A stretch of DNA of 64,000 nt. Origin: Octopus sinensis (Eukaryota). The DNA lies in the NCBI RefSeq assembly GCF_006345805.1, contig NC_043005.1, forward strand, positions 20,274,001 to 20,338,000. Direction: 5' to 3'. How positions within the stretch are numbered: the stretch's first letter is position 1; each line of letters starts with the position of its first letter. A program made the position numbers and the translations under genes. Positions 1 to 40,085 of this stretch are shown here, in pieces. The notes beneath the pieces were generated by a model. The model searched no databases, was not told the origin of the DNA, and saw nothing but the letters and a program-made list of their open reading frames with translations.

Positions 1-380
1 TCAGGGTGAGAGTGGAAAATGGGGAGAGTTATATTTTTATAAACAACCTAATTATTTTTTTATCTAAAACAAGACTATTTTTTCATAGAGATTCAGGTAA
101 ATATTGTGATATTGTGTAAAATTGGTTTAATTCATTGGTTGATCAGAAACATGAGAAGTTTTTGGCAAAATTACAGATGATTCATTGAACATATTTCACT
201 TCACATGCTTTTTTTAATGATAAGGTAGACGCAAACATGTGGGTGTATATATGTGAGTGTATACATACATATATACATGTACACATACATGAATACATAC
301 AAACATACAGATACATATACACATACAAATAAATTATATAGAGATACATACAATAATAATTTTATATATATTTATGTATG

Positions 381-382
<2 letters not shown>

Positions 383-443
<61 letters not shown>
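383..443. repeat. (TA)n microsatellite, representative of many
   Basis: Further (TA)n at 36428, 41158, 42366 and 63507; (TACA)n 54900-55010; (TG)n 63540-63598; (CAT)n 2960-2992. Confidence 0.95.
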
Positions 444-447
<4 letters not shown>

Positions 448-525
448 AACCTGAATAAAAAGCAATATAGACATTGTTTCTTTCTCGCATATATTACAGA
501 GGTAAAAGCATTTACCATCACCATC

Positions 526-538
526 ATGAAGCTTTTTG
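526..538 (+). CDS. Secreted protein coding exon 1 (ATG AAG CTT TTT G); exon 500-538 includes 5' UTR
   Basis: Acceptor tattacAG at 498-499; strong donor G|GTAAGT at 539; phase 1 joins TG of the next exon to give Val. A probable upstream non-coding exon ends at 96 (CAG|GTAAAT). Confidence 0.65.
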
Positions 539-3500
539 GTAAGTAAACATTAAGCTTCCCTGTTATACTTCTGGTCCTTTCAGATGTTGTTCATGCACTA
601 TTTCTGGAAATTTTGAGTTTGCTTGTAGCTGAGGACTATTTGTTGTTGGTTACTTGTTTATTGACATAATCTATTTCATCAAAATTAGTCTGCAAGTGAG
701 AAGCTTGTGGTCTAAAATCATATTCACATATAATAGCAATTCTGATCCAATTTCTAGTCTTTCTTTATTCTATCAATAGCATCTTTTCCTTCTCTAACAA
801 CACCTCTACATCTTTTCTGATAAAAAAAAAATCCAAACTGGGATGCTTTTACAAATTAAAATTGAAAACAATAGAAATAAATATAATGGTAATTTTATTT
901 TAGCTAAATAACTTGAATGAAATATGAACTGAAATTTTAAAATAAATAATTTTGAAACTAAAAGAAAAATTAAACATTAGACTTCAAATTTTATTGGATT
1001 TCAGTTTCAGTTTGATTTTCAAGTTCACACAAAAAGTTTTTGTAAATTTTTACTATACCCCTACCAATTTTTGATTTTTAAAAATATTTTCTCTCATTTT
1101 GAAAAACCTCAAAATATAAAATATAAAACCTTAAACTTTCACTCTATATAACATTATATACATGACAGAACTTTTCCAGGATAAGTCAATTTTTTCCGTC
1201 TGTGATGACTGAATTCAGCTCATCAATATTGCAAGGCAGCTTCTAGTTGAAATACTGCATACTTAAAAATCAGTGAAAAGTGCCATTTAGTAGTGCTTAC
1301 TTATAGCTAGGTCAACAGTACCACTAAGTAAGATGAACTTGCTACTAGATGCATTTTCTATGATCAACAAAGATTGCATTTGAAGTGAATTTGAGTGGGG
1401 TCTGCATCTTGTAGCAGAGCTGTCTTAGAAATACCTGTAGTAGGGTTGTTTTAAAGGGAATGCCTCTGGGCAAACCAATGCACTTGTATCCGTACATTAA
1501 CAAGCTACATGTATGATGGATGGAAGCACTCCGTCGGCCACGACGACGAGGGTTCCGGTTGATCCGAATCAATGGAACAGCCTGCTCGTGAAATTAACGT
1601 GTAAGTGGCTGAACACTCCACAGACACGTGCACCCTTAACGTAGTTCTCGAGGATATTCAGCGTGACACAGAGAGTGACAAGGCCGGCCCTTTGAAATAC
1701 AGGTACAACAGAAACAGGAAGTAAGAGTGAGAGAAAGTTGTGGTGAAAGAGTACAGCAGGGATCACCACCATCCCCTGCCAGAGCCTCGTGGAGCTTTAG
1801 GTGTTTTCGCTCAATAAACACTCACAACGCCCGGTCTGTGAATCGAAACCGCGATCCTATGACCGCGAGTCCACTGCCCTAACCACTGGGCCATTGCGCC
1901 TCCACACATGTATGATACAGTATACATCATGCACATGCTGTTAGTAATTACTCAGGGTGGGCAGTTGGTGATGTTTATGTAGTAAAACACACAGAAAAAT
2001 AAACGAAACACAGGAACACAACTGAGTTGTAGGCAGATCTACTTCTGCCTTTATAGCATGTAAAGAAAACGTTGTTGTAGGAATGTACGCAGCACGTGTG
2101 CTACAGCAGTTCTATGCATAGCTTTAATACTGGGATTGAAAGGCAGGGGCATATTATGCCTACCTAATTTACAAAAAAAGAAAATATTTTGTACTCTATG
2201 CATAGTAATCAGAGAAACCTTCATAATTCTATTGAATTAGGTGCATATTTTGCCATAAAAGAAAAATATTACTATTGATCTATTTTATTCAGGGTAGGCA
2301 CAGCCTATCTTGCCTACCCAGGCAGCATATCTCTGGTATACATAGATTAGTATCAGCTTACAAAACCTGTGAAACTCATAGATAACTGCTTCATGTGCCC
2401 ATGTCTTAAAATGGCACTGCTTTGCAGTACCTCTCTCTTACTTATGAGTACCTTAGGCTACTAATGACAAAACAATTTAAGAACATTTAAAAAAAATTTT
2501 AAGTATAAAAAAAAAGAATTAAAAAAGAAAGTTAAGTTGACCTAGAAGTGATTCTCTCCCCTTAATGGTAAATTCACCAGAAGTAAAGCACATTCTGTAT
2601 TTATGTAGGTATATCATCATCATCATTGTTTATCGTCTGTTTTCCATACTGACATGAGTTGGATGGTTCGACTGGGGCCAGAGAAATCAGATGGCTGCAC
2701 CAGGCCCCAATCTGATCTGGCATTGTTTCTACAGCTGGATGCCCTTCCTAACGCCGACCACTCCGAGAGTGTAGCAGGTGCTTTTTACGTGCCACTGGCA
2801 CAGGGAGCTGGCATCAGCCATGATCAGATGGTGCTTTTTATGTGCCACCACCACGGAAACCAGTCAAGGCGGCACTGGCATCAGCCACATTCAGATGGTG
2901 CCTTTTGTATTAAAGAATCTTCAAAGTAAAGTTCAGTAATCACAGAGGACTTCTTGAATCATCATCACCATCATCATCATCATCATCATCATCGTTTAAC
3001 GTCCGTTTTCCATGCTAGCATGGGTTGGATGGTTCAACTGGGGTCTGGGAAGCCAGAAGGCTGCGCCAGGCTCAGTCTCATCTGGCAGTGTTTCTACGGC
3101 AGGATGCCCTTCCTAACGTCAACCACTCTGTGAGTGTAGTGGGTGCTTTTTATGTGCCACCTGCACAGGTGCCAGACGAGGCTGGCAAATGGCCACGATC
3201 GGATGGTGCTTTTTACGTGCCAGACGAGGCTGGCCACGGCCACAATCAGATGGTGCATTTTATGTGCCACCAGCACGGCGGCCAGTCGGGGCGGTGCTGG
3301 CAACGGCCACGTTTGGATGGTTCTCTTACGTGCCATTACCTGAGTTGAATATTATACTCCACCATTCATTCTTCTATGTTTGTATTTCTGTTTGTGTCAC
3401 AATGGTTTTGGTATTTTGTTTAAAGCTAAAATTACCTTTTAAATTTTTCAGTCCACAGTTAGTGCATGTAGACATAAAATATCAAATAAAATTTTGCATT

Positions 3501-6500
3501 TCTATTTTTATTCTGCATCTTATTAACCCTTTTCGTACCAGCCTGTTTGAGTCTGTCCCTGATTCTTGTAGAAACTTTGTTTGAAAGTGATCTAAATTAA
3601 AATCTTCCATCAAAATTTCTTGTTAATCTATACTACATGACCAGCTTAATAATGGTGATGTTATTTTACTAAATTCTTCAATATTTTGAAGATTAATTGA
3701 AACAAAGACAATACATTATACAGAAATATCATGATAAACAAGTAAAGTTCCCTATCCTATTCATTCTTATTCTTTGTAGTTTTGCCTAATACTTTCTCGT
3801 GCTATACTTTATTAACTTTCACATATTTTCTGAATCAATCTTATACTTTTCTATGTTTTCTGATACATTTTTTAATTCTTTCCTATACTTTCTTATTTTT
3901 TTCTATAATTTCTTGTACTTTTTATGTTTCTAAACTATTGTAATCTTTCATACACTTTAGCTTACTTTTTAATACTCTCCTATATCACCCTGTTCTTTTT
4001 ATACTTCTTACTATGCTGTCTAATACTTTCCCATACTTCCTTATACATTTCCATGCTTTTTATATGAATCTTAATCAAACTCAGCTGCAAAGTAAAGATG
4101 ATATTTTTTCTTTCTTTTTTTCTTCTTTTTTTTACTCTTCTTTGGTTTTCAGTGTTCCTCATTTGTTCTATGTGTTCCATGGTGTTGTTCCACCACGTTG
4201 ATGCTACAAGCTATCAGTTTGACATAAGACAATCTCTGGCAACAATCGACCTATTGCTCAAGGCTGGTCTGAGTACCTTAAAAGTGCATGTGAGCAGCCT
4301 TTTTCAATCAACAAGTGGAAAGGTAAGAACAAGAAGAGATATTTCTAAGCAAACAGCCACATCATATTGATCATCTTTGTCAACATCATCATCAATGTTT
4401 CTTGATATAGGTACTAAGAAACTATTCAACTAGAGGGGAAACAATAGGAAAAAAAAATATGTGATTTGAATGATACAATTCTCTATATCAGTAAAAAGTT
4501 TGTCTTCACTCTGAAATAGGAATAAAAAGTTTGTCACTCTTTCTGACAAAGTGGGATTGTTGGTTAGGAATAGGACCTAGTAAGTAGTAGAATTATGTTG
4601 GTTTCACACTTATCAAGAACAAAGTCACCAGTCTGAATGGATAACTGTCCTCAGTGAAACACATCTAAATGTTTAGCTGTGTAAAGAAGTACTGAGCTTT
4701 ATCTGTGAACATGTAGAAGAGATAGACCCTGGAAGACATGGCATGAAGTGATGAAGCATGATCTTTGAACGTTGGGCTTCATGGAGGCAATGACTAGAGA
4801 CTGAGACCATTGGTGATATGCAGTACTTAAGAAGACCTGTAAAACCAAGTGAAATCATAGTCATGGTTGATGCTGATGTCATGCAACTGGCATTCTTGCT
4901 AGTGGCATATAAAAAGTACAGAGGCAATGTGGGCAATGCTGGTGTTATGTAAAAAGCACCTTTCAAGCATTGGGCCTAACTGAGGCAATGACAAATGACT
5001 GAGACCTTTTGGCAATATGCTATGCTTGAGTAGAAGACCCATCAAGCCAAGGGAAATTGTAGTCGTGGCAGATACTGGTGTCATGCAAGTGGCACCTGTG
5101 CCAGTGGAATGTAATAGCACCCATTACACTCTCAGACTAGTTGGCATTAGGAAGGGCATCCAGTCATAGAAACCACGTCAAATCAGACTAGAGTCTGTGC
5201 AGCCCCTCAGCTTGTCAGCTCAGGTCAAACCGTCCAACCCATGCCAGCAGGGACAATGGACATTAAATGATGACGATGTTTTTTTGTATCTGTGATCATC
5301 ATCATCATCATCATTGGTCAATAGTTGATAATGAATGTTACCATCATACAAGTACTGTCTTTCCCTTCCAATCTTCTGCAAAAATAGGTTTGGTTATAGG
5401 GAAATATTACCATGCTTGGAAACAGGTGAGGATTGGCGACAGGAAGGGCACCTGGCTATAGAAAATCTGCCTTGATGAACTCTGACTCATGCGAGCTTGG
5501 AGAAATGGATGTCAGAATGATGGTGCTGATATGTGCACGTTTCCAGCAACCAAATTCCATTCACAAAACACTGGTCAATCCAAGGTTATAGTAAAAGACC
5601 TTTTATTTAATGTGATATGCAATAGCATAGGACCTAGAACCACATGGTTGAACTGAAAACTTCTTCACTATTGGTTGTAATGGGGTGAAATGCAGTAATG
5701 GTGGTATTGAAATCAGTATTAGTAGTAACAAGAGATTACAAATCAACTTGGTTAATCCAAGTGATAACCAATAAAAAAAAGTTTTATATTTAGTATCTAG
5801 AATTCTTTTCTACTCTAGGCACAAGGCCCAAAATTTTGGGGGAGGGGACCAGTTGAGTAGATCAACTCCAGTGTGCAAGTGGTACTTAATTTATTGACAC
5901 TGAAAGGATGAAAGGCAAAGTTGACCTCAGTAGAATTTGAACTCAGAATGTAAAGACAAGCAAAATACCGCTATGCATTTCGCCAGGCATGCTAATGTTT
6001 CTGCCAGCTTGCCACGTTAATAAAGTATCTAGAACTGAGATACTAAATATAAACTAAATGTAAAACTAGATTTGAGATGATTTCATCCTATAGTCTTTTA
6101 AGCCTCTTGGATTGAATAGGTGGTAGACTGGGAGAATCCTTAACACACCAAGCCTGTGAAATTAGTTATCTCCCTTACTATTCTGAGTCGAAATACCTCT
6201 AAGGTCAATTTTGATCTATATCGTTTCTGAAGTCAAAATATAGTTGCACTCAAGCATTGAGATTAATTTAATGTACCTGTAAAGCATCCTGGATGTAAAT
6301 GGAATTATAACAGAAGACTAAAATTAACCAATATTCTAATTATCTTTCCAATTTAATACATTGGAAACAGCTATTTAACTACAATATGTTTATATTTAAC
6401 GTGAAGGCACGTGGTTTAGTGGTTCAGGCATTCGGCTCACAATTGTAAGGTTGTGAGTTCAATTCCTGGTGACACATTGTGTCCTTGAGCAAGACACTTT

Positions 6501-8482
6501 ATTTTACATTGCTCCAGTCCACTCAGCTGGCAAAAATGAGTTGTACCTGTATTTCAGAAGTCTAACCTTGTCACACTCTGTGTCATGATGAATCTCCTTG
6601 AGAACTACATTAAGAGTACACGTGTCTGTGGAGTGCTCAGCCACTTGCACATTAATTTCATGAGCAAGCTGTTCCGTTGATCATATCAGCTAGGACCCTC
6701 GCCATAGTAACTGATGGAGTACTCCTATTGTATTTAGTAAGTTCTAAGTTAATATTTGATGAACATGTTTACATTTTACAAGTTATGTTAAATAATTTCT
6801 CATTATTATTCTTATAATGAACAGATTCCAATTGATGGCACTCCACTTATCATGAATTACTTTGCTCATGATTGTGATATACATATAGGAAGAAAGAGAA
6901 TGTTGCGTAAGTTTATGGTTTTGCTTTCTTTTTTCTTCTTGTTGCTATTGTTGTGTAATCCCAGACCACCCTTGCTCAACCAAAGCTATGGTTTACAGAT
7001 AGTTGGTCAAAATCTAGGCATGACTCAGATCAGTTTTCCCAATTATTTTGTCAACCACAGTGTACACTCCAGCAAGCGTCTTATGAATTACATGCATGAC
7101 AGATTAAACATATTGCACTCTCTCCATTGAGCAATCTATTTCTGTACATCTGCAGATTCTAGTGGTAGCTACAGTGGAAGCAAAAAAAAAAAAAGACTTG
7201 AGGAGAAGGCTGCTGCCTCTTAGCACTTACCAAAGTCTTTTTTTTTTTTGGAAGTTTTACAGTTTATTTTGAATAAAGTAGTAGCTCTGTTGTATTCCGA
7301 TGGCATCTGCCATGGGAAAGAAATATTTCAGTGATGAAACTTCATCATATAAGTTGTGATCATCTTGTCCTCTTTCCTACCATGTTATTTTCAAGATTTT
7401 TCTATCCAATATATTTTTTGATTTTAAAAGCATTAAGGTCAAATAAGTGCAAAGAGATCCTTTTATTTGGTTATATTTTGGTAGTGGTGAGGATCAAATG
7501 TAACATCATTTAGGAAGGGTAGCCAACCAAGTTAATAAAGTGCTAACCAACCTGAAAGGGCTTGAGGTCCTTTCTTATAGCTAATATTATCTCATATGCA
7601 TAACATGAAGAGGCTATTTATCATGCTCAAACATTTAAAATAGTGGACTTAACAATTACACTGGCTATTCACTTGATAGGCAAGCCTTTACTGACCAATA
7701 TTTGACAATGCATAGATGTGCTGTGTCTTTCTATCTGCCTCATCTTTCTCTCTTTTCCTTCCCACACTCTCTTTGAAGAATAGGACAGAACCGGCACAGA
7801 AATAGGAAGACCATTGTTCAAATTAGAACTCAATATATATGTTGGGTATAATGGATATATTTATATTCACACTAAAGAGCTCAGTCTGTTTCTCAGGATC
7901 TAGTGATCACAGCCAGACTCACATCAACAGGGGTAAATAATTTATGTGTGTATGGAGTGTTTAGTGGAGAGTTGAAAGTTCATGGGGTCGCCAAGCATGA
8001 CTGGTGCTGCATATACTCGTGTATGTCTGTATGTAAATTTTCATTTTTTTTTATTTGGGGCAGGGGTCTCGTATAAGTGGTTTATGGTCAGTTTCATTAT
8101 GTGAGTGCATGCAAGGGAGCATTAGTGTCCATGCAAGTGTTTGCAGATAAGTTTGGATGTTTGGATGTGTGTGTATTTTTGTGCGTAAGATTTTTTTAAC
8201 GCCATTTGCGTGTACTGTTCTGTCATCATTTAAAAAGACCAAACTTTAATTTATAGTGGTAGTGATGATGATGATGATTATACCAATCTTCTTTTAATTT
8301 ATTTTTTTTTTTATACAGTTGACAAAATAATTTCCTGTGAAGCAGAAGTTACTGAGGCTGTTACGAAAACTTCAAACACATGTGTGGCATCATCTCAGAC
8401 AGAGGCAGTCCAATGTGCAGTAAAAAAGATCCTTGAGAAAATTAAGTCAGATGCTGAAAAGGATAAAAACTCTACATACTGA
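526..8482 (+). CDS. Uncharacterised secreted protein, 142 aa; join(526..538,4153..4322,6825..6906,8319..8482)
   Basis: Four exons with canonical AG/GT sites and matching phases (1,0,1) total 429 nt with no internal stop: [145 protein letters not shown] context is atcATG; AATAAA lies near 8562. No family recognised. Confidence 0.75.
1514..1906 (-). mobile_element. tRNA-derived SINE (octopus OR/OK-like), young copy
   Basis: tRNA-like head GGCGCAATGGCCCAGTGGTTAGGGCAG...GGTTTCGATTC with A/B boxes; CpG-rich; a diverged + strand relative lies at 6400-6725. Confidence 0.8.
2620..3345 (-). mobile_element. Two SINE/RTE-tail elements with (GAT)n tail and internal minisatellite
   Basis: (CAT)n-gtttaacgtccgttttccatgctagcatgggttgga...ggatgcccttcctaacg core; repeated ggtgctttttacgtgccac units. 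Confidence 0.8.
4153..4322 (+). CDS. Secreted protein coding exon 2
   Basis: Long polypyrimidine tract plus ttttcAG; donor AAG|GTAAGA; only one frame is open across the exon (FLICSM...STSGK). Confidence 0.8.
4640..5275 (+). mobile_element. SINE/RTE-tail element with a duplicated body
   Basis: gttggcattaggaagggcatccag...ccgtccaacccatgccagc...gatgacgatg 3' end; internal block repeated twice; a minus-strand relative lies at 62340-62890. Confidence 0.7.
6400..6725 (+). mobile_element. Older tRNA-derived SINE of the same family as 1514-1906
   Basis: Shares the body gtcacactctgtgtca...gagaactac.ttaag.gtacacgtgtctgtggagtg.tcagccactt with the 1514 copy. Confidence 0.7.
6825..6906 (+). CDS. Secreted protein coding exon 3
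   Basis: aacAG acceptor, C|GTAAGT donor, phase 0 to phase 1, [27 protein letters not shown]; bridges exons 2 and 4 in frame. Confidence 0.75.
8319..8482 (+). CDS. Secreted protein terminal coding exon 4
   Basis: Poly-T tract plus tacAG acceptor, open frame to TGA at 8480-8482, downstream AATAAA. Confidence 0.8.
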
Positions 8483-11378
8483 TTTACAAGCATTGCTTTG
8501 ATTTCTTTTTGCATATTACGTCCTTTTCCACCCTGGTTTTTTTAAAAATAATATTTCCCTTTGAATAAACAGATGAAATATTTTGATTATTACTGTTTCT
8601 AATTTATAAATTGTAATTACAAAATGTTTTCTTTATTTGTCCGTTTACTCTTTTACCTTCTAATTTTCTTTAAAAATTTATCTTTTGGTGAAGTCATAGA
8701 AGTATTGTCATGACATATTGGGTGGCCTGGACATTTAAACAAAGCAGAGACCATCTCTTTCCATGTCTGAATACAGCCGGTTTTCTCTGTATGCATGTGT
8801 GTGTGAGAGAGAGGAGGACCAACCCTAGTATTTGACTGATATTTTATCAACCTCAAAAAGATGTAAGGCAATATTAATCTTGGCTGTATGTGAACTCAGA
8901 ATGTAGAGAGCCAGAACAAATGCACAAAGCATCTTGGAACACAGAGAGATTTATGATCAAAGACAATTTCAGTTATATGAATAGAATCTTTCCTTCTGAA
9001 ATAATGTACTTTGAATAACATCATCCAATGAATACACTTACAGTGAATTAACTGGTCTTTAGGAGTGAAAAACTGCTTTGGATGCTTGTCCCTCAGGGAA
9101 TATGACATTTTGTTTCTCTCTGAAGAGCAAAATCTGAAACACTAGATTTCATTTCCTCTTGGCAAATTAACTCATTTTCATGTTCATTCATCTTCAAACT
9201 TTTAGGGATTAACTTTTTGCTGGTACAGATCAACACAGGTTTCTTCGTGTTTTGAATCTTACTAAAAGCTTGAGGGCAACTTGAATATTATTTTTATCAT
9301 GGATTATATAACACAAATATTAAGAGAAAAACTGGGCATGAAAGAAATCAAATGTAGTATGCAAGAAAGATGACTGAAATGGTATAAATGTAATGTGTAT
9401 AGATGAGGACAGCTGTACAAAGAAGTATCAATCACATAAGGTAGATGGAGTTTGCATAAGAGAAAGGCCCAGAAAGACACGTAAAGAAGTGGTAAAGGCT
9501 GATCAAGGACATTGAACCTCATTGAGGAGAATACAAAGTATCAAGATGACAGAAATATGCAGTTCTCAAGAAAATTCACCCATCTTGCCAAAACATAGAT
9601 TCTGGAAACACAATGTATGTGTGTATGTGCACAACTGAGCCCCTCGCCCAATTTCCTCCTCAAGACCTTCCCATCATCTGTCATCTATCATCTGCAATAT
9701 TCTACTATTGTAGTTATATATGAGCAGAATTGCATACTTCATCACCTTTTCCCTGATACAACTTTTCTTTCACACTATCCAGAATCATTTCACTTAATAT
9801 CCATCCTCCATCCTTAATATTGTTATCTCCATCCACATTTCAAATTGATTACTCTTCTGATCCACCAAATGATTGCTCTCTCATTACCATACATCTCTCA
9901 CTCTCTCCATTCACTACGCCTGCCTATTGTAACTTCACTCAGCCACATACTCTATGTCACACTCTCTTTCTCTCATCCTTCCCCTATCTACTGTATCATT
10001 ATTATGGTTCTGCTGCTCTTTACCTCCTACTTGTTCTACAGTTGTCTCCTACTCTCCTCTACTTCCTCCAACTTGTAGTATGTATCATTGATCACTCTTT
10101 ATCCACCATTCACTCTATGCATCTCTCACCCCTACCCAATTTCTACAGCTATCACCTACTCTGCCCTACTTATCAACCCTCAACAGTTGTTCTTCATCAT
10201 ATTCAGAGTCACCCATTTCCCATCTTTCACTCTCCTATGTGCTCTTGAAACCTATACCCACTCACACTCCATTCTCCTGCTCCCACTCAGTTCCGTTCAG
10301 CTTTTGTCTTAAGGGTCCACTCTGACACATCATCACTACTATCTTTATCTCTTTCCAGCTGCACTCTGCTTTCTCCTACTATCTCTTCTATGATGTAAAT
10401 AGCCATGTAGCTTCTCTATAGCAAGAAATTTGTTTATGTTCTGGCCTCTTCTCTCAACTTTAACCCCCACATTCCTCAGTATAAAGTAGCACCTCACTTA
10501 CTCAACAGAAGGAGATCGTGCAAGCTTCATGACAACCTCACTAGTTCTGGTGTCATGTAAAAACATCCACCACACTTTGTAAAATGGATGGCAGTAGAAA
10601 AGGCATTGCTTATAAATGGGAATTTTGAAACCAGGAAGGTGTTTAGAGAAATGCTTTTGGATTCTTTCAATAAAAGTCTATATTACCAATTAGATACGGA
10701 AACCAGACAATAGAATCAAAAGAAGTGAAACGTATAATACAAGTTTTATACACACAACAAAGAAATTGTATTTCTGTAATTGAAGATAAGATAATATGCA
10801 TCTGTTTGCTTTATTAACTATGTTAAACACATTCTTATTAGATTAAAGATTGCCACCAGCAATAACTTCCAGGTACCTTGTATTTTTTTACAAAAGCAAT
10901 GAAATCAACTGAGGGACAAAAGTGGTTTTGATATAAAAGTAACAGCAATCCATTTGTTGACAGAGAGCATCAAACTACAGTTAGCAAACTAAAGTTCAAG
11001 TGAGCTATAGTAACCTTTAAGCCATACAGCTGAAGTATTTTTACAATTCATTTGCATCTGAAGTATTTTCATAATTCATTTGTATCTAATATCATCAACA
11101 AACATACTTGAATTTACAACATTTGTTCTTGAGAGCTATATGAACTAAGGCAATAAAATGTTCTGTTAGGTATTGTTGTTGCTGTCTAGTCTTAGGTCAG
11201 CTCTGATTAAGTAGATCCATTTATGACCCTCTCAATTTACATTTATACAATATATCCTCCCATATTTTCAAAGAAAATAGGTTTGAGATTTGAACTACTT
11301 CTTGCAATTCAGTGATCCCATAGAGGGTCACTTCTTGGTTTGATAGCTATTCTGATAAGATGAACTAGAGAATAAAGT

Positions 11379-14060: not shown

Positions 14061-17000
14061 GTAACTGTTTCTTTTTGTTTAAAAAACAAACAAACAATTT
14101 TTTTTCTCTTGTATCAATTATGTATATTAAACATAACTTAGTGGAATGAAATTATGTAACATTGAATGTCTCTATCAAGGGTGTTTCAAAGTATCAAAAA
14201 TGTTTTATTTGTTCCTCGTCGTGTCTTTGTCTTTATAGCTACGAAACTGCATGTTGAATTGCTGTTGTTTAGGTCCAAATCAATTTTAATTAAGTAGACC
14301 TTTGATCAAAAGCATTCCAGGCATGACCATTCCATATATTCAAGGACATCGAGTAATACCTTATCTACCGTGTCATTCTCTTTTTTTAACGTTGATAGAG
14401 TGCGATCTGAAGGTTATTTGACTGTTATTTCTAAGAGGTCGAGCTATAATGGAGATTCCTACGATATCTCATGTAGATAGTACCAAGTTCAGTTTCTACC
14501 GAAGTTGGCTTTGCCCTTCTTCCTTTCGATAGGCGGAGGTAAAGATCATGGACCGCACCCCCTTTGCGATATTTTTGGTTTCTTTATTACAGGAACACAC
14601 TATATCGAGGGCAAAGATTCCGAATCTGCAAAAAAATCTGCATTTCAAAATTTAAATCCTCCCCCCCCCCGCTAAATTTCTTAAATTTTCACTTTTTATT
14701 AAAATTTTTTTGGGCAAAATGCATAGAAAATACAGAGATTATGATGCTGAAAATAAAATTCTGTAAAACTAGGGATAGATGAATGGTTAGTGAGAGCTGT
14801 GCAAGCCATGTACAGGGACGCTGTCAGTAAGGTGAGGGTTGGCAACGAGTACAGTGAAGAATTCCAGGTAGAGGTCGGGGTCCACCAAGGTTCAGTTCTC
14901 AGCCCTCTCCTATTTATCATAGTCCTCCTGGCAATAACAGAGGAATTCAAGACAGGATGCCCCTGGGAGCTCTGCTATGCTGACGACCTTGCTCTAATTG
15001 CTGAGTCACTATCAGAACTAGAGGAGAAGTTTCAAGTGTGGAAGCAAGGATTAGAATCGAAGGGCCTTAGAGTCAACCTAGCTAAAACCAAAGTCCTAAT
15101 AAGTAGGAAGGTAGACAAACCACAAATCCCTTCAGGTAGATGCCCCTGCTCAATCTGTGTGGAAAAGGTGTAGGTAGAAACTCTATAAGATGTACCCAGT
15201 GTAAGCTATGGACACATAGGAGGTGCAGCAATATCAAAGGAAGGCTAACTGGGAAGATAGTTTTTGTATGTGACAGATGCTCAGGAGCAATAAACAATGA
15301 AAATGTGCAGAGAACAACTTCCGCCACATTCCAGGGAGAAAAACTAGAAGTAGTTGATAGCTTCTGTTACCTAGGTGACCAAGTCTGTAGCGGGGGGGGG
15401 GGGGGCGCTGAAAGTATAGCTGCTAGAATTAGAATAGCCTGGGCAGAGTTCAGAGAGCTCTTACCTCTGCTGGTGACTGGCTTCCATGCTGGTGGCACAT
15501 AAAAATGATGCCAGTGGCATGTGAAAAAACATTCGAATGAGGTTGTTGCCAGTGCCACTGGACTGGCTCCTGTGCAGGTGACACGTAAAAAACACCATTT
15601 AAGAGTAGCTGTTGCCTGACTGGCCCTCATGCAGTGGCATGTAAAAGCACCCACTGCACTCTCGGAGTGGTTGGCATTGGGAAGGGCATCTAGCTGTAGA
15701 AACTCTGCCAGGTCAGATTGGAGCCAGTCCTGAGTCAAATCGTCCAACTCATGCTAGCATGGAAAGCGGAAGTTAAACGATGATGATGATATATATACAG
15801 ACACACCTCGACTTAAGTCATTTCCATTTTAGTTGTTCTTAATTATACGTCAGTTTTCAAAAGTAATATATGGAAAAATAAAAATCAAGTTAAGTCATTT
15901 CACTGGACTTTACCTCTGTCCGCTGCAGATATTGGAATATTAAAATCAATAGAAAACCATTAAAAGTACATAAAATCATGTTACTGTACAATAAATAAGA
16001 ATAAAAGCATATAAAATCATATGAAAATACATACAGTAAATGTTAAGATACACACCATAAAGTAGTGTAGCTTAGTGAACGAAATCATGAAATCAGCTGT
16101 GTTATCTAATTTACTGATCTTTTGGAGCTTATATTGCACTGTAGTTCGAGTATCTGCCATTAGATGTCATTGTCACTCATGATTCCCGCGATTGTTTTGA
16201 ATTCAGATTTGTTTATGTCTGTTTATCGGCTACTTTCTCATTCTTGTTTGTTTGTGACTTTATTTTTTGCCCCCGTGGCTCCTAAGAAAATTAAATGTGA
16301 AAGTTCTAAGTGTCATACTATAATGCTGGAAATACAGAACTGGCAATGGTTATTATCTAGCCCAGGGACAAATAAATTCAGCCTAGCCGAGCTTAGAGAC
16401 AAGTTTCTGTGATAGTGATAGACTGATATCCTCTCTATGGAGAGATTTATCACTCACCTTCTTACTATTGCACAAAAGCTGAACACTGCTCGCCAGAAGG
16501 CTCTCAGAACTTAGGAGACATCTTTTCATATATCTTAATACAGCTATCACAGCTGGCTGGAACTCTGTTAGATCATCTAGATGGAGGTCCTTAGCCATCT
16601 AGTGCCATGTCACTACTAACAAAAGTAGGTTTAAATGTCCTGGCATTTGAGAGTTAAATAACTTGGTGATAGATGGTGCACCATGTTGGTTACAGAAAAC
16701 AAACCCTGTTGACCTCTTGGATTGGACTAACTGAACATGGGGCAAGGGTTCAAATCTGCTACTATCCAGAGAGAAAGATTTCTTTCTCATCTGTTGAGCA
16801 CCAAAGTGGAGCTAAGCCTTTAAAAGTTTGCCAAAGTTCTGGAGACATATAATTGACTGTTAATTAGCTGATTAACTTTTTTATGTGAATTTATGAAAGA
16901 TTACAGAAAATTCAAACGATCAATCTATTTCTCTGAAATTTCAGATCCTTCTCGAAACTTGAAAGGGGCTCGATGGGTTGAACGTGCAGATGGAGATCAG

Positions 17001-23000: not shown

Positions 23001-26000
23001 ATATACATAATTTAGGACAATGGTTTAAAAGCACAATAAATCTGTAGAATTTGGAGTTTAAAGGGAATAGGAAACAAAAAATTTTCCAAATACCTTCTTT
23101 GTTTCTTTATGAATTTTCCAGTACAATTACAAACTTCCTAGTGTACCTATGTTACTGTTGTTCAGACATAGTTACTAGTACACCTGCCTAGTTATTAGTG
23201 ACTAGATATGTTGACACTAGTGATCAGGTAGGTGCACTAGTACAGTAATACTCAGGTGCAGCAGTACCTGAGCACTGCTATAGTTACCTAGCCACTAGTG
23301 TACTTATCTGGTATGTACTGTTCCTATCTACCTATTGTATCAGTTCATTAAGAATGAAATGTTCGATTTTCTTATGCACCAACTTTGACAGTCATTAACT
23401 CTAATGTTTTATCCTGACAATTCTTTATTTTTTCAACTTTGAAGAGTTACATCATCACTTTTTGAAATGCAATTCATGGTGTCTGATTATATTGTGAATA
23501 TTCTCTTGCAAATCAATCTTTATGAACCAATAGATAGATAAAAAATTTGAGTTGTTTATGAATATGAGTTCTGTCATGGAACCAATGCATTCCAGACAGC
23601 TCAAAACATCAATGAGCTGTTTGGTGAAGATGTGGTCAATGAGAACACTGTACATCAATGGTTTGAGAAGTTCTGGTCTGGTGACTTTACTCTTGAAAAT
23701 TGGCTCCTTAGTAGACTTGAGACCAAGGTGGATAATGATGAGCTAGAAATTGTAGTGGAAACAGATACATTTCAAACTATGCGTGAGTTAGCAGCAATGT
23801 TTGATGTTTAAATTCCAACTGTATTGGACCATATGAAACAAATTGGCAAGGTAAAGAAGCTGCACAAGTGGATACCACATGAACGGAATGTGTCTCAAAT
23901 GATATGTTGTCTTGAAATTTGCTGTTCTTTGCTGTCACAGCATAAAAGCGAACCATTTTTGCATCGTATTGTTACGTGTGATGAAAAATGGATTCTTTTC
24001 AACAATTGCAAGTGTTCTGCATGGTGGTTGAATAGAGACAAAGTGCCAAAACACAATCCAAAAAAGAATATTCACCAAAAAAAGCTAATGGTGTCTGTTT
24101 GGTGGTCAAGTGCTGGTGTCATCCACTACAGCTTCATGAGACCTGATGAGTCAATTGCAGCAGATGTATACATCAACCAATTGGATGAATTGATGAGTGA
24201 ACTTGCAATTAAACAGCCGAAATTGGTCAACAGAGACAGTCCAATTCTCTTGTAAGACAATGCTCAACCACATGTTGCACAAAGAATGCTACTCAAGTTG
24301 CTGGAACTCAACTTGGAAGCATTCTGTCATCCACCATATTCACCAGACCTTGCACCAACTGACTATCATGTTTTCCAGGCATTAGACAACTTATGGCAAG
24401 GAAAAAAAAAACATCAGATCTGAAGAAGATGCAAAAGCAGCCGTTTGTGATTTCATCACCTCTTGCTCTCCAGAATTCTTCACTGCCAGTATAAGTTACC
24501 AATAAAATGGCAAAATTGTGTTGATAATTTAGGTGCATACTTTGGTTAACTCCATTGCCTTTTGTTGAGATAAAGTATAATAAACTTTCAGTTCAAACTC
24601 GGACATTTCATTCTTAATCACCTGATATGTACCAGTTTGCTGTTGCTCCAACCTGGTCACTGTTGTGCCTCCATAGTTACTAGTATAATTACCAAGTTGC
24701 TTCTCTGTCTATCTACTTGGCCACTGTTGTTTCTCCCTGTTTACCTGTTTACTGTGTTATCAACCTAGTAGTTGGCTTATCTACCTTGTCACTAGTTTAC
24801 CTACGTGATTACAAACACAGCTTTAAATTAGACTGACATCTTGACAACATCTTAACATTGTATAAAGCTGTACATTTACCAAAGTCTTACTTAAGTACCA
24901 TTGCAGTGCCACATATTATCTGTAGCATTAATTTTAGTGATACTGGGTTCTGCTGGGAGCAATACAGAAAAACAACTGCTGTGCAAGATAAGAAAACAGG
25001 TGATTGTGATGATCACAAAATGTGTAATCACTTACGTACTATACCTGCAAAGCCACACATAGGTATGAAATAAGAATACTTCATTATAAGTCTTAATAAG
25101 TACCATTGCAGTGCCACATAATCTGTAGCATTAATTTTAGTTGGATACTGGGTTCTGCTGGGAGCAATACAGAAAAACAACTGCTGTGCAAGATAAGAAA
25201 ACAGGTGATTGTGATGATCACAAAATGTGTAATCACTTACGTACTATACCTGCAAAGCCACACATAGGTATGAAATAAGAATACTTCATTACTCTTAAGC
25301 AGTCACTTTATCTCCACTGCAGACCTCCTTATCAGGTACTGTGTTTTGGGCAATGTAGTGTGGGGAACTCATTCCTTTCCAAGCTATTATTCTACAACCA
25401 GAAATTACAGGATCACAAGTGAGTGAAATAGCTATACTGAAAATTGGAATTTTAAAAACAAATCTAGTTTACCAGGTGCTTGCACTATAATGCTATAATA
25501 CACACATATGCATGTGTGTTTGTTTGTATGAGTATGTGCACATGTGCATGCACACACTCACACACAGAGTTAACCATCTGCCACATCAATTGAAGTATAA
25601 GATCACTGACAGCCATTTAGAAACTAATTTTTTAATAGATTTATTGATACAGATGCCTGAACGCACATACTGATATACATACATATTTTCTGATTGTAAA
25701 TTCATGTTCTTTATATATACATATGCATACACATTTATACGTATATACATGTAAGGATTGCCCCAAAAGTAAAGCAAAAGTGGGCATAACTTTTTCATTA
25801 ACTAACATAGATAATTTAAATTGCATATGTTTGTTGGGAAATAGTAATTCTTCCTTTATACAAAGGTACTACTAACATAGACTCCAACATGCAATGTATT
25901 TGCATCATCATTAAACCTATCCGTTGAATCTTGTTTCAAAAAGTTCAAGTTTTTAAAAAAAATAAATGCTTTGATCAAGGCTTTCTTTACCTTTCTCCCA

Positions 26001-29000
26001 GCAATAATTTTAAATAACGATGAGAGGAATTAGATGCTGGTTTGGTCATGTGATGCATATGGATGTAGACAGGTGTGCACGGAAATAATGATCTCAAAAC
26101 ACTGAGCCTTACAAAGGAGATGATAAACTGCTTGCTGTTCATGATACAGCTACTTTCCAGAAAAGGAGACTGGCACCTTTGTCAACTGAAACAGCAGTTG
26201 TGCGTTTCTGTGCCAATCATTGGCCCTTGAACTTCTTGACCTTGAAAAAGTGGTGTGGTGTCATTCTGTTAGCAGAAATTTTGTTTTGGATCATACAAAT
26301 ATGGCCATGTTTCATCTCCTGTCACTACAGTCATCATCATCACCATCATCATTTAACGTCCATTTTCCATGCTAGCATGGGTTGGACGGTTCAACTGGGG
26401 TCTGGGAAGCCAGAAGGCTGCGCCAGGCTCAGTCTGATCTGGTAGTGTTTCTACAGCTGGATGCCCTTCCTAACGCCAACCACTCCATGAGTGTAGTGGG
26501 TGCTTTTTACGTGCCACCTGCACAGGTGCCAGACGAGGCTGGCAAATGGCCAAAAAAACATTATCTTCGTCTTCAAGCACTTCTACCTTTCTTTTCTTCA
26601 AGTGCTGAGGTACCCATTTTCCACCATCTTTTGTAATACATTGTGACCACAGCTCAGTTATGCAGCAACTTCACAGATTGTGGTTCATTTGCACAAATCA
26701 ATTCATCTTGTTGGTGAGTCATGTCAGTGTTTGCAGCAGATGGTCTCCCACTGCATGCTTTGTGTTCAATACTATTCCTCCTTCTTTAAACTTCTTCATT
26801 GATTTGTGTACATTGCTCTTGTCATTGGTGTCAACTCCTTAAACAAATTGTGGATGTTAGCCAGCCTGCACCCTTCCTTTTGTTAAGATCTCACTGATGA
26901 CACATTGCTTCTGCTTGGAACCCATTATTTGCCTTCAATAAAGAACAGGATTAATAGTTAGTTTAGAAGAAGAGTGACTGTACTAACATGTGCAAATAAG
27001 TAACCTATGTCAATTAATAAAAAAAAAAAATTACCAACTTTTGCACTACTTTTGGGACAATCCTTGTGTGTGTGTGCGCATTGTAAAGGCAATGAACAAT
27101 AAAAGAAAGGAAAAAGGTAACCCAGATACTTATTAGCTTAATGCTTTCAAGGAAGGGAAAGACTCTTAAACATTTTGGATTCTAGTCCTTCATAGGAAGA
27201 AAAGCAAGGAGTGAGAAAGAGGAGAAATGGATGTGAGAAAAAAATAAAATAGTCGAGGAATTAGGAGCTAGATGGGAATGTAGTTCTATAGGAGGGGGAG
27301 GACGAGGTGGGTGTGTAAGCACATGTATAAAAGTGTATTTGTGTTTAGAGATGGATATATGGGGAAAGTGGTGCGTGTGCTTTTTTGGATGTGTGTAGAA
27401 GTGTGCATGTGCGGAAGTATAGTGGTTTAGGTTAGTGATGGTGTGAGGTGTTAGTGTATGTTTGAAGGGAGGAGGTGGGGTTGAGTACAATTGTGAGGTA
27501 AAAGGTAACGCAAGAGGAATGTGGAGGGTGTAATGGAAATTTGTGCAAAGACATAAACGTATGACACAGTTACATGGGTGGTGTGTATGAACAAGCAAAT
27601 CAAAAATGAGAGAAATTGCAAATTCAGGGAGAAAAGAGAAGTGAGAGAAAAATCAGAGAAAAATTAATTACAATACAACGCTAGCCAAAAACAAATGAAT
27701 TCTTTGAGAGAAGTGTTATTTAAAAATCACACTACACTGAGAAATAAGTTTAGTTTGGTGAGACACAGAAAAAGGCAAGAGGAACCCATGTGCTGGAGTG
27801 TAAAGCAGTTTCTTTTCTTTTGGGTTTTTCCTACCCACTTTTCCTCTTTCTCTCTTCTATGCTTTTCTTCTGATGAAGGTCTAATGTCTGAAATGTTAAG
27901 AATCATTCCCTTTTAAGTGTTAAGCTAATACAGTCTTTCTTAAAACTTGTCCTTTCTGTGTTGTCTTTTTCTTTCTTTTATTGCTCATTGTATTCACAAT
28001 ATATTTTTAATGCTTATATAGATCTTTTATATGTGTGTAGGTGCATGTGTGTCATATGGGAAATGGGGTGAGGTGCAAATCTAGGAGGGTTAGTTGGGGT
28101 ACATAAGTTATAGATAGCTGGATGTATATTCTGAGAAGGACATTTTATATATTTTTGTTGATAGAAATTGGTACCACCATATCAAGTGAGAACTTGTGTC
28201 CAGTTCAGGAGGAGATTTATATCTCATTTTCTCTGTTCTGTTTCTGTGCAAAATGTATATTCTGCATAACTTCAGTTTATGTAGCTGTCATTACAAATAG
28301 GTACCATCAGACCATCTTAGAAAGTTATATGAGATGGATTGGTGTCTCATCATCTAAAGAAAGATTTATCTCTTCTGTTTCATTCCATGAAAACCAGAAG
28401 TAAACACTAGTCTTTAAGGGTCACTCAGGTATCATTTATGTTTTAAGATATATATTTTTTTTAATTAAAAAGTACTTCTGAGGAATTGTACTTGTTTCAC
28501 AAAAGATTTGATCTATCTGAGGCTATGTGTTGAAATTGAAGCAATTATGTCAGGGAAAATAGGTGGTTAAAATAACCTTAGCAAAGGCGGATGTATTGTT
28601 TTCAGTCGTGTTTGTTTGTTTGTCTGTGGACAAGATATCTCAAGAATCACTGGATGGATTCAGATGAAACTTTCAAGGATGTTTGGCCTCGTGACTGGCA
28701 CAAACTGATTAGATTTTGGGATCAATACAGTACCGGACATGGATTCTGGATTATTTGTTATACTTACTTTACTTGACATGAAGTATCATGATCTCTGATT
28801 ATCACCTTGAAAGCACGCTCATGGTTTCCACATAAATTATGGCAGTGTTGTTGTTTCCAAAGTTTTATTTTCGTTTCTCTATTATTAATTTTACTCGCGT
28901 CTCTATCTGAGTAGAAACTGATGAATAAATAAATCAAACTATATAAACAAACGGTAGCAAAACTGTTCAGAAATTAAATAACACTAACATATTCCGTAAC

Positions 29001-32000
29001 AATAATAAATTTAATTTATCCTTGACAGTTTTTCGTTTTACCAATTTTGAATATATCGCTCCTGTTTAAAACTTCTTACCTACTTTATTTCATAAAAATT
29101 GGCTACAAGAGCCTTACAAAGAAGTAGCTGTGGGCTGGACAAAAACACAAATGACAATGAATGAAAATGAAAAGATGATTGGAGGGGGAAGGCAGACAAT
29201 GCCCACCGATTGCAGCTTCCCAAAAACATTGTTCTCTTTTTTATTTTTATAGAAATAAGCACAAAATGAGGTATTGAACCTCTTACAATTATTTAACCAT
29301 GGACACAATATGCTCACAAAAATGAGGCGCTAAGCCTCTTACCTTTTGTCCAATAAAGTTTCAACTCGAGGCACTAAAGCTCCTGCTCCTCTTCCTGACT
29401 AGGCTATTTGCCTCCTTGAAGCACTTTGATGGTGTTATGTTGCACTTTAGAGCAAATCTATTAGTGTCCTTGTGGAATGAGTCCAAAGTTCTGCATAGAT
29501 CACTTTCCCATATGACCTCCACAGCTACCTGTGTAGGCCAATTGGGGTCCTCCATGCAGTCCAGAACCCCTTCCCTTTGGCATTTTCTTTCCAACTTCTT
29601 AATGAAGTTCTGTACAGCCCCTCCCTTGTGAAAGAAGACCACATATTCCAACTCCAACTCCATGGGAGTGGTCATAGTTTCCTCCGTCGGTGGCACAATT
29701 TCCACTGACGGGGTTTCGGGACATGCTGGCAGTGTACCACTAACTGCCGGCAAAGTCCCATTCTTTTTTTGCTTTTTCTTCCCTTGTGCTACGGAAGGGT
29801 GAAGTTCTTCCGTTTTATCCGGAGGATCTTCCCTCCCTCCTGCAGCCTTCGGTGGGCCACCATTGTTGCCCACTTTCTTCCTCTTACGGCCTTTTTTTGA
29901 GGAGGTTTCCACCTCCCTGACTGTTTCTATCTCCCCCTCTGACTGGGGAGGGGTAGATTCCTTTGTCACCAACTGTTCCAGGACCTTGTTCTGGTCCTGG
30001 GGACAGTTTTTTTTAATATAGCCTGGTTCCAGGCACAGGTGACACACCGTTGCGTATTTAACACCCCTGGAAATAAACTTAATAGTTGGCAGATGCTCTG
30101 CCAACTCTTTCTTAATATCTATTTTCGGAAAGACAGTGAAGGTGTCGAGTGATTTTGAATAAGTCCTCAACACCACTCTGTCCTTTCCCCTAAATCTTTT
30201 AACCACTGTTTGGGTGGGACAATCTCCCACTCCAAAACTGTGACCAATTTTTTTGCCATGTTAAAGAAAGTTCAAGAAAGAAATAAAAAAAGTTCAAACA
30301 AAAAAGTCAAAAAAACTTTGAAGAAAGAAAAGTGGAGTAAGAAAGAAGGAAGACAGTTCCAAAAAACACAGCAAAACACAATTCTGGCTAACCAGTACTC
30401 CTGGCCAAAGATACTCCAACAACAACAGGGACACAGTAGCAGGAACACAGCTCCATAAATTGGTTAAAAAATTTAACAAATTTCTTTTTTAAAAAAATTC
30501 TACAATTTTTGGAGGCGGGATGCACCCCCAAAACAACACAGTTCTCACACTTAAGTGAGACAGCACAACTATAGGCAGACAAATACCTGGAATTCAGTAG
30601 GGATTTCTTGTTCTAACAAAATAGACAACAAACCCCCACTGAATCCCCAAAAAACAAATTCTTACCTTATAGCTGCGCCTTCACAGTTCTACACTTCAAG
30701 ACCACTGCATAGCAACGTCTTGACCACATTCAGTGTAAAAACAACACTGAGTCACACATGCGTAAGCAAGCTGCCTTACCTTCCTGACAATTGCATTTCT
30801 AGCCCTGCCTTGAAGGAAGCTTTACTTCTTGGTCTCACGTTTTTGTGTGCAACGATATTGTTAAACTTCTATTAACAATACTATATGCAGGTCCTTTCTG
30901 TTTTCTTTCATGCACGGATAAATTTTTCACTATAGCCCTTAATGGTCATAAAGACTATATCAGTAGATAGACTAAAAAAGGCCTTCATAGAGAAAACTGT
31001 CCCTGTTCCCACTGCTGACGACACACACACAGCATTACAAACATGGCCGGCACACGCACCTTCACATTCTATGATTACCATTGGGGGTCAATCAGGTACC
31101 AGACAAGGATTCTGGATTTTTTTCTGTTTTTTTTTTACTTAATTTTCGAGAGTGGTCAGGTTCATTTTTAGTATTCTTGTTTGTGAGAGCAGTCGAGTTT
31201 ATTTCAGATATTCTCATTTTAAAAATCATCACTGGCTAATTGTTGAGAGGACGTTGGAGTTACTTTGGCAAAGGTTTGCACCCTCTGAGTGCTCTTGTTC
31301 AAAATGTTCCCATTTTTAAAATCATTCTTCCTGTTGTTTTCTGGTTTGTTGTAATAATTAATATACTTTCTGAAGATGTGTGACAATTCTCAAAGTAATC
31401 TATTCAATTTTCAGAGTGCATCACCCAAATTTGAGGAAAATGTTTTACCTCGGACACGAAGTAAGTAATTTATAGAAAGAAAACTCTTTTATTATTCTTT
31501 TGTTAGTGGTTGGGGTCAGGGACCCCAAAAATCTTAGGTAATATCTGTAGCTGTCTTACTCTTGGCAGCATCAGGGATCCTGTAGCATGAATGTCTGAGA
31601 CAATATCTACAAATATCTTAGCTACAGCAGCTTCAGGGGCCATATAGTCCGAAGATCTGAGATAATGTCAACAGCTGTCTTACTCATAGCATCATTAAGG
31701 TCCATGTAGTATGAAGGTCTGCAACCATCTACATTTATTGTTCTCTTGACAGAGTCAAGGATCCTATAGTATGACAGTCTGAGACAATGTCTACAGCCAT
31801 CTTGCCCATGGTAAGGTCAGAGTCAATTAGAAAGAAGGTCTGAGTCAATGTTTACAACTATGTTATTCTTGTCAGGGTTGGTGGCCATGCAGTATGTAAG
31901 TCTGAGACATCTACTGCTTTCATATTGGCCACTGTGCTAAGATGACACATACTATGGCCACTGTGCTAAGAAGCAGACAAGTACTGACAGGTTGAGAGAG

Positions 32001-33550: not shown

Positions 33551-34361
33551 TAAAATAAATATTGTTTCTGAATAATTTATTCCTTTTCCAATGTTATATT
33601 TTGATTTCATTCCTTAGATTCATAATAAAGATTTTTGTATTGAACTGAATGAATCTCTCTCGTTAAATTTATTGCTCTCTGTTCTAGTTTGACCGTAGAT
33701 CTATGGCTGAAACTAGTAAATGAGTATAAAATCATTAGTGATGATGATGATGATACCTCCTTTGCCCTACTGTCCTCCCCCTCCCCCTCTTCCCCCTCCT
33801 CCTCCTTCTAGCAGCAACAGCAGCAATCATCCCCTCTATTCTACTCCTATGTTAACTCACTACTTTCACCTTTCTCTCTCTTCCATCACTGCTGTGGTGA
33901 TTTGCCCAGAAGGACAAGTGTTTTTCGTAGATTTTAAGTTCTGTTGGATCATTAATCCATTGGACTTATTTCTCTTCTCTTTAGCGTTAAGCAGGTATGA
34001 AATGGAATCTTCTTCTGGGTGGGATGCTGGTCTCTTGCAGGTGACTTTACCTTGCTAATAGAATTGAATTTTTCACCTATCTTAGACTCGTTCAATGACC
34101 AGTTTTTTCTAGATCCTAAATGACTGAGAAATTTGAAAGAATGATCTTTGATAGGAGTCACAACTGACAATAATAACAAGGAGATCAGAATTGTCACCAG
34201 ACCTGCCAAAAGTCAGATTATTCCCTACTGCAAGCTCTCAGTCAAGTTTTAAATAATTTGGATCTCTGAGTTGCCCCTCTTGATCTCCATGATTCAAATT
34301 AATCATTGAAAGTAATTATTTTTTCCTCCTCTTCACTATGGATGTAATTTTAATTCTCTTA

Positions 34362-39699: not shown

Positions 39700-40085
39700 G
39701 CTGGTGCAACATAAAAAAGTACCCATGCCGGTGATATGTAAAAACACTCAGTACACTCTCTAAAGTGGTTGGCATTAGGAAAGGTATCCAGCCAGAGAAA
39801 CCTTGTCAAAACAGACGGGCACTGAACAGCTCTTCAGCTGGTCAGCTCCTGTGAAACCGTCCAACTCATACCAGCATGGAAAATGGACGTCAAATGATGA
39901 TGACGATGATATGTATATTGATATATATATACGGAGTGGTTGGCGTTAGGAAGGGCATCCAGCTGTAGAAACACTGCCAGATCTGACTGGAGCCTGGTGC
40001 AGCCTCGTGGCTTCCCAGACTCCGGTCGAACAGTCCAACCCATGCTAGCATGGAAAGTGGACGTTAAACAATGATGATGATGATA
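39700..40085 (+). mobile_element. Two tandem SINE/RTE-tail elements
   Basis: Two successive gtggttggc.ttagga.agg..tccag...ccaac.cat.c.agcatggaaa.tggacgt.aaa.atgatga units. Confidence 0.75.

Follow-up and report, generated by a model that had tools for sequence, protein, structure and literature searches.

Is a small secreted octopus protein with a single Gly-Arg-Lys-Arg (GRKR) block cut there into two chains, or does it act as one uncut domain? This question is raised by a four-exon gene at the start of a 64,000-nucleotide (nt) stretch of Octopus sinensis DNA (NCBI RefSeq assembly GCF_006345805.1, contig NC_043005.1, positions 20,274,001 to 20,338,000 of the forward strand; chromosome CM016867.1, ~20.27 Mb), which is hereafter called the window. 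A preliminary description, made from the sequence alone, had seen here a hidden gene for a small secreted protein, possibly a lineage-specific prohormone. In this study, we observed that the locus holds a genuine protein-coding gene that is annotated already, LOC115215373. Its product is almost certainly a real member of a family of secreted proteins that reaches from chitons to octopods. The reading that we prefer, with a probability of roughly 0.55, is a convertase-processed, amidated, two-chain secreted protein.

Gene structure and annotation

Exon borders were read directly from the window sequence and the exons were joined by script. The four exons (Table 1) lie on the forward strand, span 7957 nt and join phase-exactly, as had been claimed, into a coding sequence (CDS) of 429 nt that encodes 142 amino acids (aa) and a stop codon. 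All three introns run from GT to AG with strong consensus (a slash marks the splice junction); the donors are G/gtaagt, G/gtaaga and C/gtaagt, and the acceptors consist of a polypyrimidine tract and cag/. A 100% identical 142-aa protein is already in the databases as XP_029640390.1 (uncharacterized LOC115215373, Octopus sinensis), and an identical O. vulgaris protein is deposited as CAI9728785.1 ('Hypothetical predicted protein'). The O. bimaculoides orthologue, XP_014778329.1 (LOC106874926), is 90% identical and 'uncharacterized'. Thus, the gene, annotated in three octopus species, was hidden only from a prokaryote-style track of open reading frames (ORFs). There, as the preliminary description had noted, the exons are not found whole, exon 2 and part of exon 3 being present solely inside longer read-through ORFs. 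The same product modelled in three octopus annotations, exons that O. vulgaris and O. bimaculoides retain intact, and intron positions and phases that recur in homologues (see below) together place the gene beyond chance.

Over the CDS, nucleotide identity is 100% with O. vulgaris and 93.5% with O. bimaculoides. The latter comparison holds 12 synonymous and 16 non-synonymous differences (dS 0.146, dN 0.049, dN/dS 0.34). Replacements fall on 3 of the 22 signal peptide residues, on 3 of 60 in the chain before GRKR (N chain) and on 8 of 56 in the chain after it (C chain), and on 0 of the 4 residues of GRKR itself. Exon 1 is identical in O. vulgaris and has its O. bimaculoides counterpart at L003:10001-10013. 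Flanks and introns are 87-92% identical to those of O. bimaculoides, and the 3' flank can be aligned as far as 8676. In all three species a ribosomal protein L7 (Ribosomal_L30) gene lies upstream on the opposite strand and an NDUFA12-family gene lies downstream. The window aligns colinearly with the O. bimaculoides locus, and inserted repeats account for the differences in intron size; ~2.36 kb of intron 2 (4349-6707) are without a counterpart in O. bimaculoides, where this intron measures 140 nt.

The N-terminus is signal-peptide-like by heuristics (M-K start, a 10-aa Kyte-Doolittle window of 2.8 and V-D-A at positions -3 to -1), which agrees with the earlier assignment. Two cysteines, C9 and C12, fall within this segment. 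GRKR at residues 83-86 and the four cysteines of the mature part (78, 95, 110 and 121) were read in the sequence where the preliminary description had placed them. The calculated mass of the mature protein is 13.2 kDa, with 6.6 kDa for the chain of residues 23-82 and 6.1 kDa for that of residues 87-142. A tblastn search of the protein against the whole window revealed no paralogue or tandem copy, and Rfam gave no match anywhere in it. Transcription may start near 490-499, or an untranslated exon may lie upstream, beyond the edge of the window.

Homologues in other molluscs

An exhaustive phmmer search with the single sequence as query against 1.84 billion representative proteins (E<=1e-3) returned nine matches, all of them 'uncharacterized' or 'hypothetical' at source. 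They belong to two Octopus paralogue groups (LOC106870724 / CAI9721111 and LOC106883259 / LOC115215941), Argonauta hians, Haliotis asinina, Patella caerulea and the chiton Liolophura sinensis (420 aa). The family spans Polyplacophora, Gastropoda and Cephalopoda and is therefore not lineage-specific as had been supposed. All 15 aligned sequences possess an N-terminal hydrophobic signal segment and the pattern C-x(3-5)-G-(R)-K-R-x(6-11)-C-x(14-15)-C-x(10)-C, which in the window protein reads C78-x4-GRKR-x8-C95-x14-C110-x10-C121. Conservation of the basic site and the cysteines in orthologues, the lack of which would have refuted the prohormone proposal, holds throughout: every full-length member from chiton to octopus has four cysteines and a single G-(R)-K-R in each unit. 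The glycine always abuts the basic run, while the spacers vary in length and sequence (3-5 aa from C78 to Gly, 6-11 aa from KR to C95). Invariant in the alignments are G60, C78, K85, R86, C95, A97, V99, E101, C110, A118, C121 and A122, and T67, T104 and Q115 are nearly so.

By exact splice mapping, two introns are common to the window gene, its paralogue (L007), Patella (L008) and the chiton (L009). One is in phase 0 after S-G-[K/D], the other in phase 1, 2-4 residues past G-K-R. Homologues and shared introns from chiton to octopods thus indicate, on sequence comparison, a family not described before, which arose no later than the split of chitons and conchiferans and is not cephalopod-specific. 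With the single-sequence query no member was detected in squids, Nautilus, bivalves, heterobranchs, annelids, brachiopods or any other non-mollusc, a result that does not establish absence. Beyond isoforms and a further Patella copy, two word-indexed profile searches gained nothing; they missed several known members and are unfit for claiming absence. Homologues of exon 2 (81% identity) and of the C-chain exon also occur in read-through ORFs on Logan contigs of 1.0-1.7 kb (SRR11869391/SRR11869390, L001/L002; ERR14857105 etc., L010-L013), which presumably derive from other octopods.

Predicted fold and disulfides

An AlphaFold2 (AF2) model built with only two Octopus orthologues was unusable (predicted local distance difference test, pLDDT, 37) and was replaced by a model from the 15-sequence alignment, which is of medium confidence (pLDDT 72.6; predicted template modelling score, pTM, 0.63). 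The mature part had been described as helical. Instead, the new model predicts a helix (29-42), five beta-strands (58-63, 70-75, 79-82, 91-101 and 106-112) and a second helix (115-140). GRKR lies in the modelled hairpin loop between strands 79-82 and 91-101, which is apparently stapled by C78-C95. Within the domain, confidence is lowest for the block 81-90 around it (57, with neighbours at 82-89).

Cysteine pairings were inferred from strand boundaries and register. With residue 82 pairing with 91, C78 would face C95. The protein probably holds two disulfides, C78-C95 across the beta3/beta4 hairpin and C110-C121 from strand 5 to the C-terminal helix. In the alignment, an extra cysteine pair of Haliotis matches residues 100 and 107. 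These would face each other across the beta4/beta5 turn if 101 pairs with 106, and this gives an independent hint in support of the modelled strand register. Because the N chain has only one cysteine (the C chain has three), an inter-chain disulfide would keep the two parts of the cut protein joined. The link to the C-terminal chain that had been considered before would thus follow naturally from cleavage.

In keeping with the preliminary description, no known family was recognised. Pfam gave none for the window protein at E<=10 or for 15 members at E<=1, where only scattered chance matches appeared, and a sequence-profile search of PDB at E<=10 found no relative. Foldseek reached a best E of 0.33 with template modelling (TM) scores <=0.32 against PDB, and a best E of 0.05 with TM <=0.44 against BFVD. 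Its top matches (dsRBD, autotransporter anchors) are generic alpha-beta-alpha pieces and were judged to be chance.

Diversification of the precursor

The Liolophura sinensis gene (CM072721.1, L009:10001-21550) encodes three units of about 127 aa, >90% identical, in a single frame with A-K-P-K-R/Q joints. Single chiton exons (e.g. L009:17836-18140) run from the end of one unit through A-K-P-K-R into the following unit, which starts with Gln. In the chiton, Haliotis and Patella, a short propeptide ending in K-R and followed by Gln stands directly after the signal peptide. Octopods have lost this N-terminal K-R site, the window protein reading D-I-R-Q there. The KPKR/Q polyprotein of the chiton and the KR/Q propeptides suggest a family that is built to be cut at K-R sites. 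Furin is specific for R-X-K/R-R, and PC1/3 and PC2 cut K-R or R-R pairs. None of the family K-R sites has Arg at P4, and thus they resemble regulated-pathway (neuroendocrine-type) convertase sites, not furin sites.

Two paralogues vary the G-K-R site or the chain after it. In the O. vulgaris paralogue CAI9721111 (OX597817.1, L004:15671-16096), exon 3 holds an in-frame 39-bp unit repeated 10.9 times with 98% identity. The array encodes ~10 copies of G-K-R-S-P-S-K-S-Y-S-E-I-I exactly at the G-K-R site and multiplies the GKR-flanked 10-mer SPSKSYSEII. Its repeat unit looks like the exon end plus exonised first bases of the intron, with the donor GT changed to CT, and the O. bimaculoides orthologue is without the array. 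In the paralogue LOC106883259 / LOC115215941, the isoforms differ only after G-K-R-F-L. In O. bimaculoides, LOC106883259 has a tandem series of at least three and probably four duplicated last exons, each of which encodes a variant C-x14-C-x10-C chain (Table 1); it lies on the same chromosome as the orthologue of the window gene, ~63 Mb apart. As far as the encoded sequences show, the family thus diversifies its precursor around one putative cleavage site in three ways, by multiplication of the unit, by alternative C-chain exons and by expansion of GKR-flanked repeats.

Proposed processing and alternative explanations

In the processing that we propose, residues 1-22, with their hydrophobic core and V-D-A at -3 to -1, would act as the signal peptide. 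The mature part of 120 aa would fold as in the medium-confidence model, with one helix before and one after a five-stranded beta-sheet. Probably, C78-C95 would staple the beta3/beta4 hairpin and C110-C121 would tie strand 5 to the C-terminal helix. The exposed hairpin loop would offer G83-R-K-R86 to a proprotein convertase of the PC1/3 or PC2 type, which would cut after R86. A carboxypeptidase would then trim R-K-R, and peptidylglycine alpha-amidating monooxygenase would convert Gly83 into a C-terminal amide on Ile82. The product, an amidated 60-aa chain (6.6 kDa) disulfide-linked to a 56-aa chain (6.1 kDa), would be released and would have its action beyond the cell, where it would most probably be a signalling ligand. 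Cleavage at GRKR, taken by itself, is slightly more likely than not. A role as hormone, pheromone or other signal is a tentative proposal, and a venom role finds no specific support here.

Several points weigh against this processing. The modelled protein is a compact single domain with both chains in one sheet and could equally work uncut, and a beta-turn loop would also keep Gly beside charged residues. An amidated chain of 60 aa is long for a classical neuropeptide, and a dN/dS of 0.34, obtained from only 28 substitutions, is above that of typical strongly conserved hormones. No copy of the exact protein came from any Logan-assembled run, which gives no support for abundant expression. The family is also absent from the searched parts of the supplements to the mollusc proneuropeptide catalogue (PMC6425005), the abalone ganglia peptidome and the octopus paralarval brain atlas, although this is weak evidence in each case. 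The searched parts of the argonaut genome paper supplements likewise hold no family sequence (again weak evidence), and a full-text search of the literature found no paper with any LOC, XP or UniProt identifier or any of six sequence motifs of the family.

The compact alpha/beta domain of the AF2 model with both halves in the same sheet, the moderate dN/dS and the absence from the searched parts of the neuropeptide resources would suit an uncleaved small secreted globular protein, with a function in binding, transport as a carrier, adhesion or defence. In such a protein the G-(R)-K-R loop would serve as a structural turn or as a basic binding patch, and hairpin loops often carry Gly and charged residues. 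However, Gly always keeps its place directly beside K-R while the spacers on either side vary, KR sites are apparently used elsewhere in the family (the chiton KPKR/Q linkers and KR/Q after the propeptide), and the loop of one paralogue tolerates 130 aa of GKR-flanked repeats, which is easily explained if they are excised. We therefore regard an uncleaved protein as possible but rather unlikely. A classical neuropeptide precursor, in which the halves separate and are further cut into short bioactive peptides while the Cys-containing C-terminal part is a mere spacer or associated peptide, appears improbable. It would account for the signal peptide with the conserved G-KR, for the paralogue array, which would yield ~10 copies of a short amidated peptide, and for the multi-copy precursor of the chiton. 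Conservation nevertheless extends across the whole unit, with invariant residues before and after the site; the unit holds no further conserved basic sites, and a folded domain with paired cysteines is predicted. A gene-prediction artefact or a pseudogene, with ORF fragments chained by chance, might be suspected from the only 13 coding nt of exon 1; this reading is effectively refuted already by the intact CDS in three Octopus species, by homologues that share the intron phases in four mollusc classes and orders, and by a dN/dS below 1.

If the two-chain processing that we prefer is true, a phylum-wide family of two-chain secreted ligands was missed by the curated proneuropeptide catalogues, as far as the searched parts go, and the protein is a candidate for receptor deorphanisation and for studies of endocrine or chemical signalling in octopus. 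If the protein is uncleaved, it is one more conserved orphan secreted protein, useful for annotation and unremarkable. At its widest, and only as a speculation, the family might represent ancient (pre-Cambrian-split), mollusc-wide two-chain amidated hormones or pheromones of a previously unseen alpha/beta fold, with a disulfide-stapled hairpin as the Gly-Lys-Arg nick site, diversified by unit multiplication, C-chain cassettes and mini-peptides in the nick loop.

Features of the window

The coordinates of the gene and of the other features of the window are given in Table 1, together with the last exons of the O. bimaculoides paralogue. Beyond the gene, these include an NDUFA12-family gene, an ORF with a Pfam UPF0542 match, remnants of transposons and a dispersed repeat resembling a short interspersed element (SINE).

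Table 1. Coordinates of the gene, its paralogue's last exons and other features (window positions, except where a locus is named).
Feature	Position	Strand	Remarks
(TA)41 microsatellite	363-444		80 nt 5' of the start codon
TATATTA	490-496		30 nt 5' of the ATG
Acceptor-like ...ttacag/	ending at 499
Coding exon 1	526..538	+	13 nt, ATGAAGCTTTTTG then gtaagt; MKLF, 4 codons including ATG plus 1 nt; start of the signal peptide; phase-1 intron next
Intron 1	539..4152	+	GT..AG; SINE-like repeat copies within, about 2613-3208
Exon 2	4153..4322	+	170 nt; preceded by a long pyrimidine tract and cag, 3' end AAAG/gtaaga; remainder of the putative signal peptide to A22, predicted N-terminal helix, linker to S-G-K61; phase-0 intron next
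Intron 2	4323..6824	+	GT..AG
Exon 3	6825..6906	+	82 nt; preceded by aacag, 3' end TTGC/gtaagt; predicted beta-strands 1-3, Cys78, G-R-K-R; stops 2 codons and 1 nt past the site (phase-1 intron)
GRKR site	6888..6899	+	GGA AGA AAG AGA = Gly83-Arg84-Lys85-Arg86; putative convertase cleavage and amidation signal
Intron 3	6907..8318	+	GT..AG
Exon 4	8319..8482	+	164 nt; preceded by (t)n-atacag; chain after GRKR, Cys95/Cys110/Cys121, predicted beta-strands 4-5 and C-terminal helix; TGA stop 8480-8482
AATAAA, candidate polyadenylation signal	8564..8569	+	from sequence only; 82 nt past the stop
LOC106883259 last exons (O. bimaculoides)	L007:20394-20555, 26135-26278, 30632-30787, 33839-33922		RefSeq isoforms X1, X2 and X3 use different ones
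NDUFA12-family gene	13919 to about 33600	+	product start MLRVRSKMSRRAKWLWGLFKNS; large introns full of transposon fragments; syntenic in O. vulgaris and O. bimaculoides
Single-exon ORF	40804-41097	+	intact, 97 aa; Pfam UPF0542 (small integral membrane protein 15-like), E 1e-27
Transposon remnant	14790-15502	+	reverse-transcriptase fragment and PHD finger
Transposon remnant	23824-24255	+	mariner transposase fragment
Transposon remnant	60739-61384	+	Tc1-like helix-turn-helix (HTH) and DDE_3 fragment
ORF listed with the transposon remnants	29361-30230	-	289 aa; C-x2-C-x9-C zinc-knuckle-like motif, basic tracts; no Pfam match
Dispersed SINE-like repeat	2613-3208, 5090-5278, 15532-15790, 26331-26532, 39726-39999	both	~200 nt; copies each match several places of the O. 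bimaculoides locus at 73-95% identity; two copies in introns 1 and 2 of the gene

Comparison with known systems

Cystatin/cathelin-like domains pack a helix on an antiparallel sheet with 1-2 and 3-4 disulfides, and the present protein shares only this cysteine topology, as inferred here. The assignment was rejected, as there is no Pfam match and no cystatin among the 50 Foldseek PDB matches listed. Tandem polyprotein precursors that are cut at basic linkers are known from the nematode polyprotein allergens. The three near-identical units of the chiton homologue, with KPKR linkers in one frame, are alike in layout. However, the octopus window gene is single-unit, there is no sequence kinship, and the fold predicted here is alpha/beta, not all-helical.

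The two-chain prohormones of the insulin/relaxin type are closer in their logic, in which a precursor with a signal peptide is cut at basic sites within a disulfide-bridged segment to give two linked chains. Potentially, the repeat insert of CAI9721111 would behave as an excised connecting peptide, as in insulin and relaxin. The present family differs in having four cysteines without CC instead of six, a predicted order of helix, beta-sheet and helix in place of three helices, and a single putative cut site after an amidation Gly. Membership of the insulin/relaxin superfamily was rejected, with no match to Pfam PF00049 (E<=10; 15 members at E<=1) and four mature cysteines without CC.

Within molluscs, the califins of the Aplysia atrial gland (ELH gene family) consist of a 36-aa amidated chain that is disulfide-linked to an 18-aa chain after G-K-R processing. 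They are a molluscan precedent for Gly-Lys-Arg cleavage and amidation with the amidated chain bonded to the next chain of the same precursor. Differences are the absence of HMMER or Pfam similarity and, in the present protein, chains of 60 and 56 aa, two predicted disulfides and a beta-sheet core. ELH has been described as a gastropod-restricted homologue of DH44 (PMC6425005), whereas the present family includes chitons and octopods. Membership of the ELH / CRF-DH44 family (Pfam CRF; a helical amidated peptide of about 36-41 aa) was also rejected, as there is no Pfam match and the 60-aa chain before GRKR is modelled as mostly beta.

The mollusc proneuropeptide catalogue of De Oliveira et al. 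(2019) lists 65 families (PMC6425005). Among them is PXRX, a new mollusc-specific family of four-Cys secreted precursors with a P[FM]R[WY] motif and two proposed disulfides, which was found in conchiferans only (PMC6425005). PXRX and the present family are alike as mollusc-restricted orphan secreted precursors with four conserved cysteines. The present family, however, is also found in a chiton (Aculifera), and P[FM]R[WY] is absent from all its members in a regular-expression search, so that membership of PXRX was rejected. In summary, LOC115215373 and its relatives appear to form an orphan family that applies a familiar processing logic in a novel structural context.

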